From the NCBI RefSeq assembly GCF_000150275.1, contig NW_002060955.1, positions 660,886 to 724,885 on the forward strand: a DNA stretch of 64,000 nt. Direction: 5' to 3'. Under the pieces are notes generated by a model that was not told where the DNA came from, searched no databases, and was given only the letters and a program-made list of their open reading frames with translations. Position numbers and translations under genes: made by a program. The DNA comes from Trichoplax adhaerens. Taxonomy: Eukaryota > Animalia > Placozoa. Position 1 is the first letter of the stretch. Each line of letters starts with the position of its first letter. Below, piece by piece: positions 33,946-53,790 of the stretch.

Positions 33946-34108
33946 CAATTATTTTATCTGTGATGGAAGGTATCGCTTTTAGCCAACTATGCTAGATTGA
34001 TTATCCACTTTTTGCCAAGGAATAATTTACTCTTGTATATTACAAACGTTGTCAGGCTTGGGCTGATGTATGCTCTTCCCAGCTTGTCCACTATTCTGTA
34101 TATACGTG

Positions 34109-34122
34109 GTTACTATAGAAAC
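34109..34122. promoter_or_regulatory. RFX X-box upstream of AK9
   Basis: GTTACTATAGAAAC fits GTHNYYATRRNAAC with no mismatch, ~165 bp upstream of the inferred AK9 UTR-exon donor; AK9 is a ciliary/flagellar gene. Confidence 0.65.
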
Positions 34123-34159
34123 CAACTTGGTCTTGCTGACGGACTACGCGACTAACGCG

Positions 34160-34625
34160 AGTGTTCACTGTTCAGTGTTCAGTAGTCAGGAAAGCGTACT
34201 ACAGTACAGTATACCGTACGGTACATTATTGTTCATTGCACACTGTATTGTACACTGTACACTGTACAGTACTGATTCGACTCAGTTGGAACAGTCATAG
34301 TGCCCGTGATAGAAGATCTTGGCGTCTGCCTAGCCTGAGTCCTGTACAGTGTACAGTGTACACTGTACAGTACTGATTCGACTCAGTTGGGACAGTCCTA
34401 GCGTACAGTAATTCCGTCTGCCTAGCCTGAGAGTCCTGTACTGTACACTGTAGTGACTGTACAGTACAGTACATTACTGTACTAGCTTGAGTCTAATGCT
34501 ATTCCTGTACAGTGTACAGTACACAGTACACTGTAAATTGAAGATGTACTGTAAGGGTTTGTACTGTACTGTGTTCACTGTGTACAGTACAGTACAGTAC
34601 AGCACACTGTAGTACACAGTACTAG
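34160..34625. repeat. CTGTACAG/TACAGT/ACTGTA-rich quasi-palindromic island with an internal ~95 bp duplication
   Basis: Dozens of actgta/tacagt words; tacactgtacagtactgattcgactcagttgg at ~34259 and ~34359; cgtctgcctagcctgag at ~34323 and ~34416. Confidence 0.85.
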
Positions 34626-34721
34626 GGACCTTTATTAAAGTACAAAGTACTCTAAGGAAATTCTTTTCCATCTGTGTTGTGGCTAATTCCAGGCGTCCGT
34701 CAATCCCTCAACTTGCCTCAT

Positions 34722-34864
34722 TCAGAATGCATCAAACTCCGTTATATCACTTATATACCTCGCTGAAATGATTGTGAAATGGTATTACTATAGAATGTAA
34801 TGCATTTGTAGAGCTATTTCAGCCAAGAATACTTCTATAGTACAACGAGTTCGATGCATTCTGA
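34722..34864 (-). ncRNA. Candidate long-hairpin non-coding RNA (unassigned family)
   Basis: Inverted repeat 34722-34746 / 34841-34864 (12 bp perfect, then G-U pairs on the minus strand), inner stem gctgaaat/atttcagc and further nested pairing. The fold is seen in sequence; expression is not shown. Confidence 0.35.
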
Positions 34865-34899
34865 CTGCGAGCTAGCGTACTGCATAACATCTTCGATTG

Positions 34900-35150
34900 C
34901 CAAATTCTACGCTAGTACGACAATCTTGCATATCGTCCAGTACTGAACTTCGCAGGTCTTGTGTACAGTCTACTGCAGTACACTCAGTACGCAGTACTGT
35001 ATCGAGCAGTACAGTAGCGACTAGTGACTACGGATGTCGGAATACAGGACACCGGTCGACCACTAGGCAAATCGAGTGGTTCTGTCTATCTAGTCTGTCC
35101 ATGGCTCTTGACAGTGTCGTCATGCGTGTACAGTACTGTGTGCAGTAGTG
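34900..35150. repeat. Second CAGTAC/TACTG-rich island immediately upstream of ZNF277
   Basis: gtgtacagtctactgcagtacactcagtacgcagtactgtatcgagcagtacagtag and gtgtacagtactgtgtgcagtag; higher GC than flanks. Confidence 0.65.
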
Positions 35151-35225
35151 TGTGTCGGTCAAACGTTGAAGTCGAAGGGATGCTGTTGAGTTTCGAATCT
35201 CCTTTTCGTCAGAAAGTGTGCAACG

Positions 35226-38200
35226 ATGGATGATGGCAAAATTCCATGCCTTCTGTGCAATCAATTATTTCGTCATAAGGAAGAACTGCAAGATCATATG
35301 CAAAGCAATTACTCGTTAACTATTAATAGCATAGAATGCGTAGCTGATTTATCCAGGTAACAACTACTGTATAGTGAAGTCATTTAGACGGCGATGAAGT
35401 CGACATGAATACAGTACATCAGTACACCATTGCTACCAGCTAAAATTTGATTGCATCACTGACAGTCCCAATATACTCGCTATTCGATAGAAGAACTCTG
35501 TTGCTACCATGCTTGCGTAATAATGATGATGTATGCTAGTGAAATGCTATAGTTGACAATTTGGAATGGGTAGTAAGTGCTAGATGTGACAATGAATGAT
35601 ACGCGTATCATTATAATAAATGAATGAATGATTGATTCATCATGGCTAGCTTCTGTCCTCCTTGCAAGCCACGTAGGCTCATGTTGACCAATGATGGATG
35701 TACTTGCTCCATGTTATGTCTATATTTTGCTATCAAGGATATCACTGTCATGATGATATTGTATGGCTCGAATAGTATTGATGCAAAAGCTTGGATAGGT
35801 CTGCTATTCGGCTACGGTGTAGGAAAGCATAGTGTTAGTCGTAGCGGCGTAGGTATATTATTAATTACGAGTAATTATTGTACTACATTACTAGCCTGAC
35901 CTACAAAAGAATACAAACCATATTACTTTCGAATGGATGTTCTACTCAGTATACAGTTCTAGCTGTTATTCGGTCTAGCACAAGCATAGTAAAATCAAGT
36001 TCATCTAGGTTGCATTGTATACTATTACATTGAATAACATTGGATGGTACTAAGGTAGTTATCACTTAAAGATTGCTGACAAGAAGCAATGTTATTATGC
36101 CACATATCGCAAAGTTCATACATTACGCGTATTACTGTACTATTGGATACGACTATGATTGAAGATGGCAATTTTTCGGTGAGAATAGGTATTTAAAGTA
36201 TTGGAAAGACAGATTAACCATAGATAATTTCAAGGACCTTCTACCGTTCGATCATCAAATAGGTAAAATCTAAAATTTGGGATGCATTATTTTACAATTT
36301 ACTAGTAACTAGCAGTATAATTAATTGATTCTTTACATGTGCACGTACAAACTATAAGAGCTGTATGTGTTAGGCCGTGATAATGAAGATGACTGCAATC
36401 TTAGAGAGAAATTAAAAAAGGATACTTTGGTGAGTCTATGTAGAAGTTGTGCAATCTTACCGAAATAAAGCTTTTCATAAGCATAATACGAGCTTTGAAT
36501 GAAATCTCACTATCCCGAGTAACTTTAGATAAAATTTTATCGTGATGTATATCAGCTTGAAATTGAAATGTTAGACCGTATCACAATGCTTGTCATGCGG
36601 TATTTCCTATTATGACCTTTGCTGGTAATGACTAGACTTTAAGTGCGACAGTTGATCTCTTTTTCAATTTGTTGTATACGAGTAGTTAGCTGCCTTAGCT
36701 CAACAAGAACGAGAAAGGATGGACAGTGAACGGATGCTATCGTGTTTATTTTGTAAAAAATTATCAACTAGCAAAAGGTACTGCTGGTTAGCAAGTTAAA
36801 TACTTATCATCGAATGTTGGTCTAAAGTGTCTTGAAATTATTTCTAGTAATCAGCTTATTAAGTATAAAAATTCCAGAACTTATAGAATGTCTATTCTTT
36901 GAAATGAAATAGAAAGGAGTTACTAAATCATATGAATGAAGAGCATGCGTTTAATTTAGGCTTACCAGATAATCTAGGTAACCCTTGGTGACTACAGTAT
37001 TATGATTTTATTGCTATAGTTTCAATACATGGTGCCTCATAGGTTATTATAAATGCTCTTCATAGAGCTAACCCTTCAAAGCTGACTTTTATCAATTACG
37101 TTTTAACAGTTTACGTAGATCAGTTTTTAACCATCTTGAAATATAAGCTAGAACGGTATGATATTTTATTTTGTACGTTTACTTGAATTGCTTTCTACAG
37201 TGTAAAAGGATTAATCACAATTCGAAATATAAGTAATGAAAACTATTTTCTCGTAGATTTATTTGTTTATATTGCGAAAGAACTTTCCGCGATTCTACCA
37301 CGTTGAAAGACCACATGAGAAAGAAAAGGCATAGAAAAATTAATGCCAATAACAAGGAATACGATAAATTTTATATTATTAATTATCTAAGTAAGTACTC
37401 TTATATACCAAAATTCAAGAACTTGGAAATTTCCTTTTAGATTTACAAGTAAACAGACAGTATCATTACTAGCAAGTTAAAAATACAGACTGTGCTGCAC
37501 TGCATTAAATAGGATCCTGGTAAAGGTTGGAAGAATATTCAAGAAGAAGAGAACAGACAAGACGACAACGATACAGACAACTCGGATGAGTGAGAGACTT
37601 TTATAGCTAATTTGCAGTTATATAGGGGATAACTGACTATCTCATTAAAGTTTTGCTATAACCTTTCTGCAGGGAGTGGAGCGATGAATCTATCGATCAG
37701 GCTGCAAACGCTTCATGTTTGTTCTGTGATTTGACTTCCCAAGTCAATGATGTTGTCGTCCACTTGAACGTAAGGTTACTCATATAAGTTCTATAATATA
37801 GTAATTTTTAAACTTACTTACTGTCCGTAATCATTAGGATTTTCACAATTTTAATATTTCTGGTCTTGTGAAACAATTCGGTAAGAAACTATACTATATC
37901 TATACAAGAGTATAAATAAAGAAATAGTATAGTCCAATAATTTAATTTCCATAGATTCGAACAGAGCTATGTTACAATATTCTCGTGTGTATTTGGACTC
38001 ATAGGACTAAATATCTACGAACAGATAAAACTAATTAACTACTTACGATTAAAGGTAAGTCATGCAAGTAATAGTTCAATGAAAAATATTATTTGTACGA
38101 GATGCGTGAATCTATGTTAATGCCGATTTCTGTAACCGATAAAATTTAGATTTAGTTTATTAATGATTATAGAAATGTGACTTGGGTGTTAATAAATTAA

Positions 38201-39458: not shown

Positions 39459-42400
39459 TTATTTCCTCCCCCAAAAATTCTCCTTTCTTTGTTTAGATCT
39501 TTCTAGTACATCAGAAGCATAAGAACTAGCCATAGAGGAAACTGACTCTCGATCATCCAATAAACGGTTTTTTAATTTAGAAATTCGGTCTGAAATTTCT
39601 GCTATATTGCCGTCATGGGGATTATTATCGCCAGTATTTCGATGAGAATTCGAATAATATCCTCTGTCTGTACTGTTTTCATTACCAGCAACATTACCAT
39701 TTTCATTGCGCTTAACGATTGTAGTTGCATTCTGGCCAAATTTTCGTCTCAGATTGGATGATTTTGGCGGCCTTATATTTGAATCCGAAGTTAAATTGCG
39801 ATTTTCTTTCGTCGCTTCGTTCTTGTGGTTAGCAAATCCGACGGTTGTTTTAGCTTTACTGTAGGTATCCACATTTTTTAAATTTCCTTTATATTCCTTA
39901 TTTAATCCATCTACATAAAATTGAATTATTATCAATTAAATAATTTAGATATCAAACGAGTTGTGTTGATGTTATAGTGAGTTGAAATGATTAAATTAGT
40001 TAATATGATGTATGAAGCTTATACGTAGATTCTTAATTTAAATAAAACATTGCATATGTGATAATATTTACAGTTGCCACTATGCAGCGTATTACCGGAG
40101 TTTGATTTTGTAGTTACGAAACCATTCGTTTGCTCATGGTCATGACTCTTACTCTTCGGTTCATATGCTTTGTTATCAATGGGATTTCTTCTTTCGACAA
40201 TAGTATTACTTCCTAATTTCTCAAATTGGTCATTCCCATTCCCTTGTCCAGCTTCAATATTTCCATTACCAGGCCTTTCACTCAAAGTTTCTTCATCGTC
40301 GTAATCCTCATCAGCTTTGTTACTTTCTTCAGTTTCGTTTTCGTTCGCTTCGACGGTCCAGGCTTCCTTTGGCTGGGAAGGAGGCAATTGCTGTACTTGT
40401 GACACCTTCTACGAATAATATTAATCTTTATCAAATTACAGCATCAAAAGATGGAAATAAGGTAGATGTGAAATAACAATAGTACCTTTGAAGTTGTTGA
40501 GTAACTACCACGTTCATTTGTAGTGCGATTTTCTCTCCCTGATCTAGAAGTATCTGATGCAGGTTCCCAAAGATCTTCTTGTGCCATTTCCATTACCAAT
40601 AGATTCTTTCTTGTAAAGAATGTTCCCTGCTGCGATCTTTCACGAAACAGTTGAACCTTTTCACGCAGTTCCAAAATCTAATTATGACATAAACAATAAA
40701 TACATCGTCAAAATTAACTAAGAATACGATCCATGATTATTCGCAGTCGTAAATACTTATAAGTTGCCAAGCTATCTCAAATACCTGTTTATACCACGAT
40801 GGTGTACCATCAGGAGAAATCACAGGAGAATTATCATCATCCTGGATATATAAATCATAGAAATACGTAAGCAAATAGCTACAGTAAAATTAATATTTTA
40901 ACATTTCTGTAAAAGAAATCAACTTAGACCAAGCTTCAAGAGGAAGTCTAAATTAAACATGCCTTAATTTTGGTTATATTCTTATCAGTGATTCGCTCTT
41001 TCGGAACGTAGGAACCTCCTCTGTATGCCATTAGGAAGGGTGCCTTAAAGTGTTCTTGATATTCCGTTGTAAATTTCCTAAATAGAAAATTAGATCATTT
41101 TAAGAATCGCTAAGGTAGTCACTAGTAAATCCTTTAATCTTAATGCTATACTTTCGTCTTCGATGAGGGAAGAAAGGTCGATCTGGATTTTCAGATTGCT
41201 CTAAACGTTCCATATAATCAGATATTTTGTCTTTATAACCAGATGCTTTAATATCTATTTTATTTTAAAAGAATAAATAAATTAATCTGGCAGATAGTAT
41301 AAAAGAGATTGAATTGAAAAGATTACCTTCAGATTTCTCTTTCTATTGCAATTGTGGTAAAAAAATAGTAATTGGTTTGAGTAATCAAGAAAATGGAATT
41401 AATTTATAAATAATAATACGTAGAATCATTAAGTCTTAAGTGATTAGATTGCATAGACAAAATAATCATATAAATACGATTATACCTTATTATAATAGTC
41501 TCCATCTAGAATACTTTTCGTAGTATCTAAGCTGCTTTCCGATCGTTCATCGATAGAGCGGCTAGGACGTGCCAACCTTGATGATTGATCTTGCGCGGCT
41601 GGTTTAGTAGACTGCTGCATGGATTGCCTCCAATCCTGATACTGTCTTTGATATTCAGATTTTACGTTAGGCCTTGGGCCCATATCAACCTTAACAGGCG
41701 CTAGAAAAAGCAGAGAATATCGTAGATTGTTAAAACATGTATCATTGGTTATTACCCTTTGTAAAATATTGCATAAAGCACTAGTGGTCTAACCAATATC
41801 AGTACTCGATTTGAAGATGGTATTATCTGCGGCAATAATTGGTGATGCTCTTTCCGGTAATTTTTTCCAATCGTATTGTCTCTGATACTCAGATTTGCCA
41901 TAAGCTAATCTAGGAGGATTAGTAGGGCGTAAACCAGCTTTGTACTGTAATGCTTTGCTACCAATCTTATCCTGCAAAAAATCGAAAATGTCAGTTCAGT
42001 ATTAAATCCTTACATTAGTATGTTATGATGTTACCTTATCATTAGAATAGGCTAATAGTATAATAGTAGCTAATAGTTATACTTGTAATGCCTTAACGCG
42101 AGTATTATTTGTGAAACGCTGTTACGTATTTGATATTGATTGTTATTGTGTGTAGGTAGCAAGAAGATAATTCAAGTTGTAGCTCATGATAGTTGGATAA
42201 GATAGTAATTATGCTGAGATTAAGTTGAAATATGTATTTACTAATGGAATAACTATGTTAGGAATATTTCAGTTCGAGATATCTTCCATAGTAAGGTATA
42301 ATAATATAATTACAATGTAGTTGTTTACAAATTAGACAGTTCTTTATATAAAGTGAATCATTCGAGTAAGAAAGTACTGTATTGTGAATAACTGTGCCAA

Positions 42401-51510: not shown

Positions 51511-53790
51511 TTATGGATGGGACATTGTACTATTGTGCTTTATTAATATTTTTCGACATCGGCTAATATAGTATTGCTTGGTGCAATCTTGACATTTTTC
51601 TCGATAACTTTTTAAATTAAATTGGCAGTTACATTTTACGCTTTGCGTGGATTTGGTAATGTGATAACCATAATCACAGCACATTTCTTCACACGAAATT
51701 TCACCAGCTTTAGCATACAAATGACATCGCCTACCAGCAACGCCAGTGATTCTATATTTCTTGTTTTTAGCGCAATAGTCAGGTGATGGATCAATATAAA
51801 TTAGTTCGTTGAGTTTAGGTAATCTTGCTCTCGAATTGTTTATTTTAATTACCAATTTGGTCTTGAGTCCAGTTTGCGGGTCTTTAGCTGAAGATTTCGC
51901 AAACATTGCTTTTTTGACTAGATTGGTTATTATGCGTTTTATATCCTTATCTGACGGTATATGAAAGAAGCAGGTACTGATAATGCTCATTTCCCCAAAA
52001 TAATTGCAATGAACTTTTACTATTTTCTTTATTGCCTTATTTTTAAAGGAAAATAAAATCAGTTTGAAGAGGTTAGAAAAGAGTTTGATGATAAATATAT
52101 ATAGAATTGCATGATTTTCAAAATGGCTTAAAATGGCTTAAATTTTCTAGTAACAACTTAGATCCTTTTTAATAGTGTAAATTATAAAATTATGGAACGG
52201 AAATATAGTAAGCTGTACAATTTTATAGTTTTTTTTTCTCTAAAGTAGAAATTATAAATCATATACTATCCATGCGATATAAATTTTTAATTAAATTTTA
52301 GTCTAAATTATTACATGAATTGCAACGCGGTGGTTGTGTTCTTCCATTAAACGACGACGATCAGATATTCTAGCACTATTTAGAAAGCTTTCCACAATTC
52401 CGAATATTCTGTGACATCTTTTAAGATGCTTATGCATATTTTCACCAGTGCTAGCATTCAAACCAGGACAGATATTTAGAGTTGTTCCAGATAAGCATTT
52501 CCTTACGCTATTGCGGGCTACTGTTGCTGCAATATATGCAGTTCTTATAGCAGCTTCCTTACTACCTATAATTATTAAAATTAAACCGATAAATGCAATA
52601 AGATTCTAAACTGCAACTAGAAAAGTAAATTTAATGCATTATACCGGTACATCTGCATGTAGTCAATATACTTATCATAAATCATATAAAATGATATTAC
52701 ATTAGAATTTTAATAAAGTAGATTAATATAATAACGTCTATAAGTTATATTACGCAATTTACCGATTGGTATTGCCTGAAATCGTATAGCTGACGACTCC
52801 ATATTGGTTTTACAATTCCAACGGTGAAAGCGGTATTTTTGACGACATAATCGTATGCCTGCTTTTATCCCATTATCAATTAGTTCAGGTAAAATTGGGC
52901 ACTTTTTGCAATGGCCAAATTGTGTTGTAGTTAGATCTAATAGTTTGCAAGGATTAAGAGATCCACTATCGATTGAGAGAGAAAGGAAATTTATTTTAAA
53001 CAAGACAATATCTTGATTAAATTGTATATTGAATTACTTGATCAAATTTATTAATATAGAGTTTATAATATGCGGATATGTAATATATTCAGAATTCACC
53101 AGTAGCACAATTGCAGCAGCATTGGTTTTAAAACATTGCTGTAGTCTACTATAAATATATAATTAATGTCATTTCCTGGCAATTTAAATTTTACTGTTAT
53201 AATTACTTTAAATTCGATTTTGTTTAATTTCAAAGGATATTTTATATAGGAGCATATACATTTTCTAAAGTTATTACATCTATTAATTAAATGATCTTGT
53301 AAAATTTTGTATAATTGGTTATTAAGTTATAGAAACAAATTTTGTCTCTTCTTTGACAAGGGTATATATCTATAGTAATTTGAACATTATTTCAAATGAA
53401 GCTTAATCAATTGGGTAAGTTTAATGTCTATTCAAAAAATGTATCTCTGAAATAAAGTTTTTACAATTTGAGAAATTAGAAAATATTGCATGGCTTTCTA
53501 ACATAACTTGTAATAAAATAAGATAAAAATTTTGTACGTTAATAATATGAACTTTATTAACAGTAAGTCCTTTGTAAATTATTGACGCAATTTAAACAGA
53601 ATCCGCAGACAGAGCTTACAGTGTTTTAAGAAATACAAAATACGAATTTTAAAACAATCTTTGTAGTTTTTAATGATCAATGGCGTTTATGATTTGATAA
53701 AATAGCTAATTACCTGGCATAGGGTAGAAATATGGCCAAAAAGAGCATATGATGAAGCTGATAAGAATGATATTGTTGATTATTAGTCAT
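51511..53790 (-). CDS. Wnt: Divergent Wnt-family ligand, 4 exons, ~351 aa
   Basis: Exons 53714-53790 (hydrophobic MLFLAIFLPYA signal-like), 52763-52965 (GIKAGIRLCRQKYRFHRWNC), 52315-52565 (GSKEAA...RRLMEEHNHRVA), 51511-52035 (LIYIDPSPDYC...GVAGRRC...CEEMCCDYGY...CNCQF...CQDC...C). Splice phases 2/1/0 give one uninterrupted 1056-nt frame. Subfamily not assignable. Confidence 0.92.

Follow-up and report, generated by a model that had tools for sequence, protein, structure and literature searches.

Hairpin-2 palmitoleoylation is treated as near-universal among Wnt proteins, being needed for Wntless binding and providing the main contact with Frizzled, and the clinical development of Porcupine inhibitors presupposes that Wnts need this modification. 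A 64,000-nucleotide stretch of the Trichoplax adhaerens genome (contig NW_002060955.1, positions 660,886 to 724,885; hereafter "the window") raises the question of whether a Wnt can be maintained without it: the window contains a Wnt gene whose hairpin 2 does not carry the acylation motif. We find that the gene has an intact open frame, that it is under purifying selection, and that the motif is absent from the gene and from both of its orthologues. Most likely, the gene is a functional, selectively maintained, old orphan Wnt of placozoans that is lipid-independent, and it is probably a second natural lipid-free Wnt besides fly WntD.

The gene itself is already known. A Wnt profile scan of the AT-rich Trichoplax assembly (105.6 Mb in 1414 contigs) yields exactly three Wnt genes, the published count (PMC2959043, PMC13128682), and Di et al. 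2026 named the three Wnt8, WntA and WntB (PMC13128682). What is new, as judged by sequence comparison, is a second, independently evolved and conserved lineage of Wnts lacking the acylated Ser. PMC13128682 makes no mention of lipid, serine, cysteine or Porcupine, and in the searchable literature, outside which many subscription papers lie, we found no report of a placozoan Wnt whose acylation site is missing.

Hairpin 2 lacks the acylation motif

Hairpin 2 of the window gene (51967..52008, minus strand; residues C10-F23 of exon 4) reads CNYFGEMSIISTCF where Wnts have CxCHGxSGSCxxKTCW. The first-pass annotation of the window had described this hairpin as two residues shorter than in other Wnts, without the inner Cys pair, and with Met at the acyl position and a Ser one residue later; the translation, in which exon-4 residues 10-23 map to 52008-51967, and the alignments agree on every part of that description. 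In particular, the hairpin retains its outer Cys pair but has lost the inner pair and the His of CHG. Met16 aligns with the acylated Ser, and Ser17 adjoins it, both in an HMMER alignment with human Wnt7a and in a MAFFT alignment of 70 sequences. The MAFFT columns occupied by Y12, M16 and S17 are at least 90% Cys, Ser and Cys, respectively, in the family.

A survey of the 94 best representative Wnts with a match spanning hairpin 2 indicates how far this departs from the family. The pattern C.C.G.S is present in 87 of the 94, so that its absence is far from typical; Thr occupies the same register in three (the Styela and Clavelina Wnt-2b-A-like proteins and one unnamed protein), and the remaining four are aberrant. 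The absence of the motif is thus real and unusual, yet not unique among predicted proteins.

The survey also bears on the acyl site in general. The Wnt-2b-A-like proteins of the tunicates Styela clava (P0014) and Clavelina lepadiformis (P0028) read CKCHGKTGSC and CKCHGPTQSC, with Thr at the acyl position and both disulfides. A protein of the hemichordate Glandiceps talaboti (XP_077998206.1, P0029; 692 residues, Wnt C-terminal half) reads CRCHGFKGC and has no acyl Ser, and two assembly proteins (P0073 and P0113) are also without the acylation register; loss of the Ser therefore recurs with a frequency of a few per cent. Natural variation at the acyl site is broader than stated in reviews.

An alternative exon that restores CxCHGxSGSC, a possibility raised by the first-pass annotation itself, is rejected. 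None of the patterns C.CHG, CHG.S, G.SGSC, C.C.G.[ST] and W[GA]GC occurs in any of the six frames of the 64-kb window, and all three frames of intron 3 (279 nucleotides) are closed by stops.

Gene structure and family membership

The gene lies on the minus strand and has four exons that encode ~351 residues, including two residues with split codons (Ser and Gly); all of its exon junctions are GT/AG, with canonical splice sites. Exon 1 (53714..53790) starts with the ATG at 53790, encodes MTNNQQYHSYQLHHMLFLAIFLPYA and two bases of the split Ser codon, and ends at the donor CCAG/GTAATT; its hydrophobic core, MLFLAIFLPYA in the translation, looks like a putative signal peptide. Exon 2 (52763..52965, minus strand) encodes the start of the N-terminal domain, with the framework C...C...C...RWNC and one extra Cys (HCKKC). 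Exon 3 (52315..52565, minus strand) encodes the remainder of that domain, including an N-A-S sequon, and ends in ...EEHNHRVAIH; it reads LNICPG in place of CxC, with loss of the second Cys. Exon 4 (51514..52035, minus strand; 174 residues), followed by the stop TAA at 51511-51513, begins AIKKIVKVHCNYFGEMSIISTCFFHIP and comprises hairpin 2 (the "thumb"), a linker, and the C-terminal cystine-rich domain.

The window gene is a member of the Wnt family, as indicated by Pfam, the Cys framework, and the fold of exon 4. Specifically, a comparison with the Pfam wnt profile (PF00110; curated cut-off 20.3 bits), which the first-pass annotation had proposed as a check, places exon 2 (3.3e-07, 30.6 bits, profile positions 4-52) and exon 4 (1e-23, 84.8 bits, profile positions 158-305) above the cut-off. 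Exon 2 was also matched in the genome scan, and in HMMER comparison with Protein Data Bank sequences exon 4 matches Wnt5a (3.9e-16) and Wnt7a (2.4e-10). Exon 3 searched alone against Pfam wnt gives no match; it does align with a profile made from full-length Wnt relatives. The motifs RWNC, SPDYC, CCDYGY and CNCQF are all present. Most core cysteines had been called intact, and indeed 19 of the 24 framework cysteines are there, which together with the extra Cys make an even total of 20, where the family framework comprises 22-24. The losses fall at the second Cys of the N-terminal CxC, in the inner pair of hairpin 2, and in the pair of the W-C-C motif.

The junction between exons 3 and 4 (52315/52035; ...EEHNHRVAIH/AIKKIVKVHC) puts the first hairpin Cys 17 residues after the His of HN(N/H), as in canonical Wnts. 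The start of the last exon just before hairpin 2 reflects an intron position that is the same in the window gene, in both of its paralogues, and in one of its orthologues (L010, below).

The gene is conserved and under purifying selection

A word search with the open frame around exon 4 as query, scored on exon 4 alone, recovered two partial orthologous proteins, L010 and L012, that are 63-65% identical to the window gene. The orthologues are each present in two independent assemblies (Logan SRR30664516 and SRR30664515; ENA metagenomes ERZ23499115 and ERZ27263980), on contigs with 29-30% G+C. The sequence upstream of the called orthologue genes reads AIKKHVKVHCDNIGEVTIITACW in L010 and AIKKTIKRRCYNIGEETCW in L012. 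L010 includes the end of exon 3 (...LKRCRKLF...EEHNHRVAIH/GTAAGT) and the same acceptor (TATAAG/GCAATAAAG), and its exon-3 fragment (L010:3-209) is 65% identical to exon 3 of the window gene, with a ratio of non-synonymous to synonymous differences (pN/pS) of 0.24.

Neither orthologue has the acylation motif in its hairpin, CDNIGEVTIITACW in L010 and CYNIGEETCW in L012, and the acyl-Ser column, which holds Met in the window gene, holds Val and Glu in the orthologues. The L012 hairpin bears an extra in-frame 12-nucleotide deletion, which makes it four residues shorter than the window hairpin and six shorter than a canonical one; the deletion is identical in two independent metagenome assemblies (L012:240-749 and L013:225-734). 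The alignments thus place the loss of the motif before the split of the window, L010 and L012 lineages.

The first-pass annotation had held that the gene is intact and not a pseudogene, and had suggested the ratio of non-synonymous to synonymous substitution rates (dN/dS) between orthologues as a check. The Nei-Gojobori dN/dS for exon 4 is 0.175 between the window gene and L010 (dS 1.42) and 0.224 between L010 and L012 (dS 0.57), neither of which is neutral; between the window gene and L012 synonymous sites are saturated. Bootstrapped pN/pS values for all pairs, including the exon-3 fragment, are 0.24-0.33, with upper 95% limits of at most 0.44. Intron 3 shows 52% nucleotide identity between the window gene and L010, compared with 68-70% in exons. 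All 12 exon-4 cysteines are invariant across the orthologues, and three N-x-S/T sequons are conserved. These features indicate that the gene is constrained and encodes a protein predicted to pass through the endoplasmic reticulum. A pseudogene is rejected by the dN/dS values and by the conserved cysteines and sequons, and the open frame, the canonical splice sites and the even Cys count concur.

A profile of the three exon-4 sequences, searched against 1.84 billion representative proteins, matches 744 of them at an E-value of at most 0.001. Its own cluster scores 6e-80 and the next best match 3e-13, and the nearest named matches outside the cluster are Wnt-7b-like proteins of Limulus and Tubulanus. 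By this measure the window gene is an orphan Wnt lineage, known from this genome and two close relatives.

Predicted structure and the second Frizzled site

Structure prediction, a further check that had been proposed for the locus, supports a Wnt fold for exon 4. The AlphaFold2 model (70-row alignment) has a mean predicted local distance difference test score (pLDDT) of 83.5, and the top nine Foldseek matches to it are all solved Wnt chains (E 8e-11 to 4e-4). In the model, a turn at 14-18 links strands 7-13 and 19-25 of hairpin 2, which puts Met16 at the hairpin tip and Ser17 inside the turn. The index finger forms a long hairpin (residues 124-140 and 145-160) with a pLDDT of ~95.

The tip of the index finger, Frizzled site 2 in Wnts, is also altered. 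The finger hairpin (51592..51633, minus strand) reads CNCQFNLKSYREKC, in which the W-C-C tip has become K-S-Y, so that the window gene has NLKSY where Wnts have x-W-C-C-x; the cysteines of columns C142 and C143, at least 90% conserved in the family, are missing. Both orthologues read NLKNY, and the loss of W-C-C is therefore common to the window gene and its orthologues.

Paralogues and genome context

The other two Wnt genes of the genome lie on contig C1402 near 934-936 kb and on contig C1414 near 10.135-10.141 Mb, and the window gene is only 27-30% identical to either. Both paralogues keep the CxCHGxS register, in the hairpins MCKCHGTSTACTYNTCW and CTCHGTSGSCQFKTCW (MCKCHGTSTAC and CTCHGTSGSC, the latter in the C1414 paralogue). 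The C1414 paralogue also lacks the W-C-C finger tip (CNCIYNLFLKNTVNC; exon L002:1501-2010, ~10.1406-10.1411 Mb), so that Frizzled site 2 is remodelled in two of the genome's three Wnts. The same paralogue has CLKCGY where Wnts have CCGRGY. On contig C1402, the two Wnt genes (712 kb and 934-936 kb) are on the same strand, ~220 kb apart and 30% identical in the last exon, and the pair may be an old Wnt linkage.

The first-pass annotation had also listed loss of the WGGC hairpin of exon 3. The loss is real, as exon 3 reads HLKRCHR at this site, with the Cys kept and W-G-G lost; it is not specific to this gene, as the paralogues read GEEC and WKALC and all three Wnts of the genome are without WGGC. 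We therefore reject it as a special trait of the window gene, about which it tells us nothing specific.

Elsewhere in the window, positions 34001-36000 form the sole G+C-rich stretch (0.41, compared with ~0.30), and a 158-residue open frame at 39462-39935 (minus strand) has a weak Pfam TEX33 match (E 8e-4; 20.3 bits, where the cut-off is 27). This frame probably belongs, as one of its exons, to a neighbouring gene of another kind.

Is the protein lipid-free?

The loss of the Ser, of the CHG His and of the inner disulfide, together with the shortened loop, makes it most likely that the protein is not O-palmitoleoylated. The Porcupine substrate motif is gone from hairpin 2, and with the inner disulfide the hairpin tip has lost the bond that stiffens it. 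By analogy with WntD, the protein would be exported by the ordinary secretory route without Porcupine or Wntless, as a soluble and possibly diffusible product. With changes in both the lipid thumb (site 1) and the W-C-C tip (site 2), any contact with a receptor would have to rest on protein surfaces. We consider it likely that the protein is a soluble ligand of this kind, not palmitoleoylated, exported as WntD is, and acting via protein contacts. The further proposition, that an ancient pan-placozoan Wnt lacking both contacts with the Frizzled cysteine-rich domain (CRD) still activates beta-catenin signalling, is a tentative one that we think more doubtful.

Several points weigh against a lipid-free Wnt. 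Searches and folding were run one exon at a time, and the evidence is thus at the level of exons rather than of the full-length protein. The gene may be any one of Wnt8, WntA and WntB. The sources of the orthologues appear to be placozoans on the strength of G+C content, exon boundary and gene structure, and identity. Wntless and several MBOAT genes are present in the genome, and the literature mentions a placozoan PORCN; the other two Wnts need them in any case. Finally, the residue one after the acyl column is a hydroxyl residue in all three lineages (GEMS, GEVT and GEET), and Ser17 lies in the modelled turn.

This hydroxyl residue and the position of Ser17, together with the Wntless and MBOAT genes, are what one would expect if the lipid had been kept and placozoan Porcupine acylated the Ser or Thr one position downstream (Ser17 in the window gene, Thr in the orthologues), with Wntless-dependent export of a protein with a remodelled thumb. 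Protein and DNA alignments alike support retention of G-E-x-[S/T] in the three lineages, neither the outer disulfide nor the Gly has been lost, and Thr at the acyl position occurs naturally in the Styela and Clavelina Wnts. The near-fixed register of the family argues the other way: G-x-S is invariant in all but seven of the 94 representatives, three of which have Thr in that same register. The window hairpin has also lost the His and inner disulfide of the substrate hairpin. In L012, only seven residues separate the two cysteines, with the Thr directly next to the closing Cys, which leaves little to enter the enzyme tunnel; the placement of the 12-nucleotide gap is ambiguous, and so the homology of the L012 Thr is uncertain. 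The peptide substrate used for Porcupine in vitro has both disulfides, C5-C19 and C7-C14 (PMC12612157); beyond that description, the literature gave nothing usable on tolerance of Thr, need for the disulfides, or a consensus string. Overall, we judge a shifted acylation site to be unlikely. We rate as less probable still a lipid-free protein of Wnt fold that works as an antagonist or as a ligand of something other than Frizzled, binding LRP5/6, a CRD-only receptor or another Wnt. Such a role would suit a protein in which both canonical CRD contacts, lipid thumb and W-C-C tip, are altered; WntD itself inhibits Dorsal signalling (PMC2427328), and Trichoplax is reported to be without Dkk, WIF-1 and Cerberus (PMC13128682). 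Set against this, overexpression of each of the three Trichoplax Wnts raises Axin and body size and the knockdowns lower them, which suggests agonism despite the compensation noted among these Wnts (PMC13128682). Moreover, loss of W-C-C alone is no mark of an antagonist, because the C1414 paralogue is also without it.

An artefact or decay, that is, a degenerating duplicate or a wrong gene model in which another exon carries the motif, would account for the strong divergence of the gene (27-30% identity to its paralogues, no match better than 3e-13 beyond its own cluster) and for the failure of exon 3 alone in Pfam, and the gene model derives from genomic DNA alone. Yet dN/dS is 0.18-0.22 at saturated synonymous distances, the window gene and L010 both have an open frame and canonical splice sites, the intron position and the spacing to HN(N/H) are conserved, and coding potential for the motif is absent from the 64 kb. 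In addition, peripheral expression of all three Trichoplax Wnts has been detected by fluorescence in situ hybridisation, quantitative PCR and single-cell RNA sequencing (PMC13128682); the combination of no expression and neutral dN/dS, which the first-pass annotation had said would count against its proposal, is therefore contradicted on both sides, by expression and by purifying selection. This explanation is largely refuted, and we hold it to be very improbable. A lipid-free Wnt, exported without Porcupine or Wntless, remains the reading that we favour.

If correct, a second, independent lineage of lipid-free Wnts would offer a natural experiment on the purpose of the Wnt lipid and on the means by which a Wnt spreads in an animal that has no basement membrane or true tissues. 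A Ser-less Wnt that appears to be conserved across deeply diverged placozoans stands, in one animal, beside two canonical paralogues; were the pan-placozoan reading true, it would imply that a Wnt of an early-branching animal is exported and engages its receptor independently of lipid, purely by way of protein contacts. Because a three-way comparison of Wnts is possible within Trichoplax, the lipid question is directly testable there, and electroporation and RNA interference tools have been published for this animal.

Comparison with known Wnts

The lipidated Wnts of solved complexes (XWnt8-Fz8 CRD, 4F0A; WNT3-FZD8, 6AHY; WNT8A-WLS, 7KC4; WNT7A-WLS, 8TZO) belong to the same family and have the same fold as the placozoan Wnt, and share with it RWNC, SPDYC, CC-x-x-GY, CNC-x-F and the C-terminal cystine framework. 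The placozoan Wnt differs from them in having no CxCHGxSGSC, WGGC or W-C-C. The missing elements make up the thumb tip, which inserts palmitoleate into Wntless and the groove of the Frizzled CRD, and the finger tip of site 2. The aberrant Wnts of the survey (the Glandiceps protein, P0073 and P0113) are Ser-less too, but are single predictions without evidence of conservation or selection. The two Trichoplax paralogues share with the window gene the exon-4 boundary before hairpin 2 and the absence of WGGC, as well as, in the C1414 gene, the absence of W-C-C; unlike the window gene, they keep the CxCHGxS acylation register.

The closest known system is Drosophila WntD, which, like the placozoan Wnt, is a natural Wnt without a hairpin-2 acylation site, and which serves as the model for the behaviour proposed here. 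WntD is not acylated, is soluble without detergent, and requires neither Porcupine nor Wntless for its secretion and activity (Ching, Hang and Nusse 2008, PMC2427328). A 2023 review still lists it as the one unlipidated Wnt (PMC10112924), and the first-pass annotation, in calling WntD the known exception, accords with both papers. Unlike insect WntD, the placozoan Wnt is an orphan without a close relative beyond its own cluster, and it has also lost the inner disulfide, two hairpin residues and the W-C-C tip. Orthology to WntD is not supported, as the exon-4 profile finds nothing better than 3e-13 beyond its own cluster. Because the lineage is an orphan, known from this genome and two relatives, and because both paralogues keep the Ser, the loss is independent of that in WntD, as had been proposed for this locus, and the likeness between the fly and placozoan proteins is, on present sequence comparisons, convergent.

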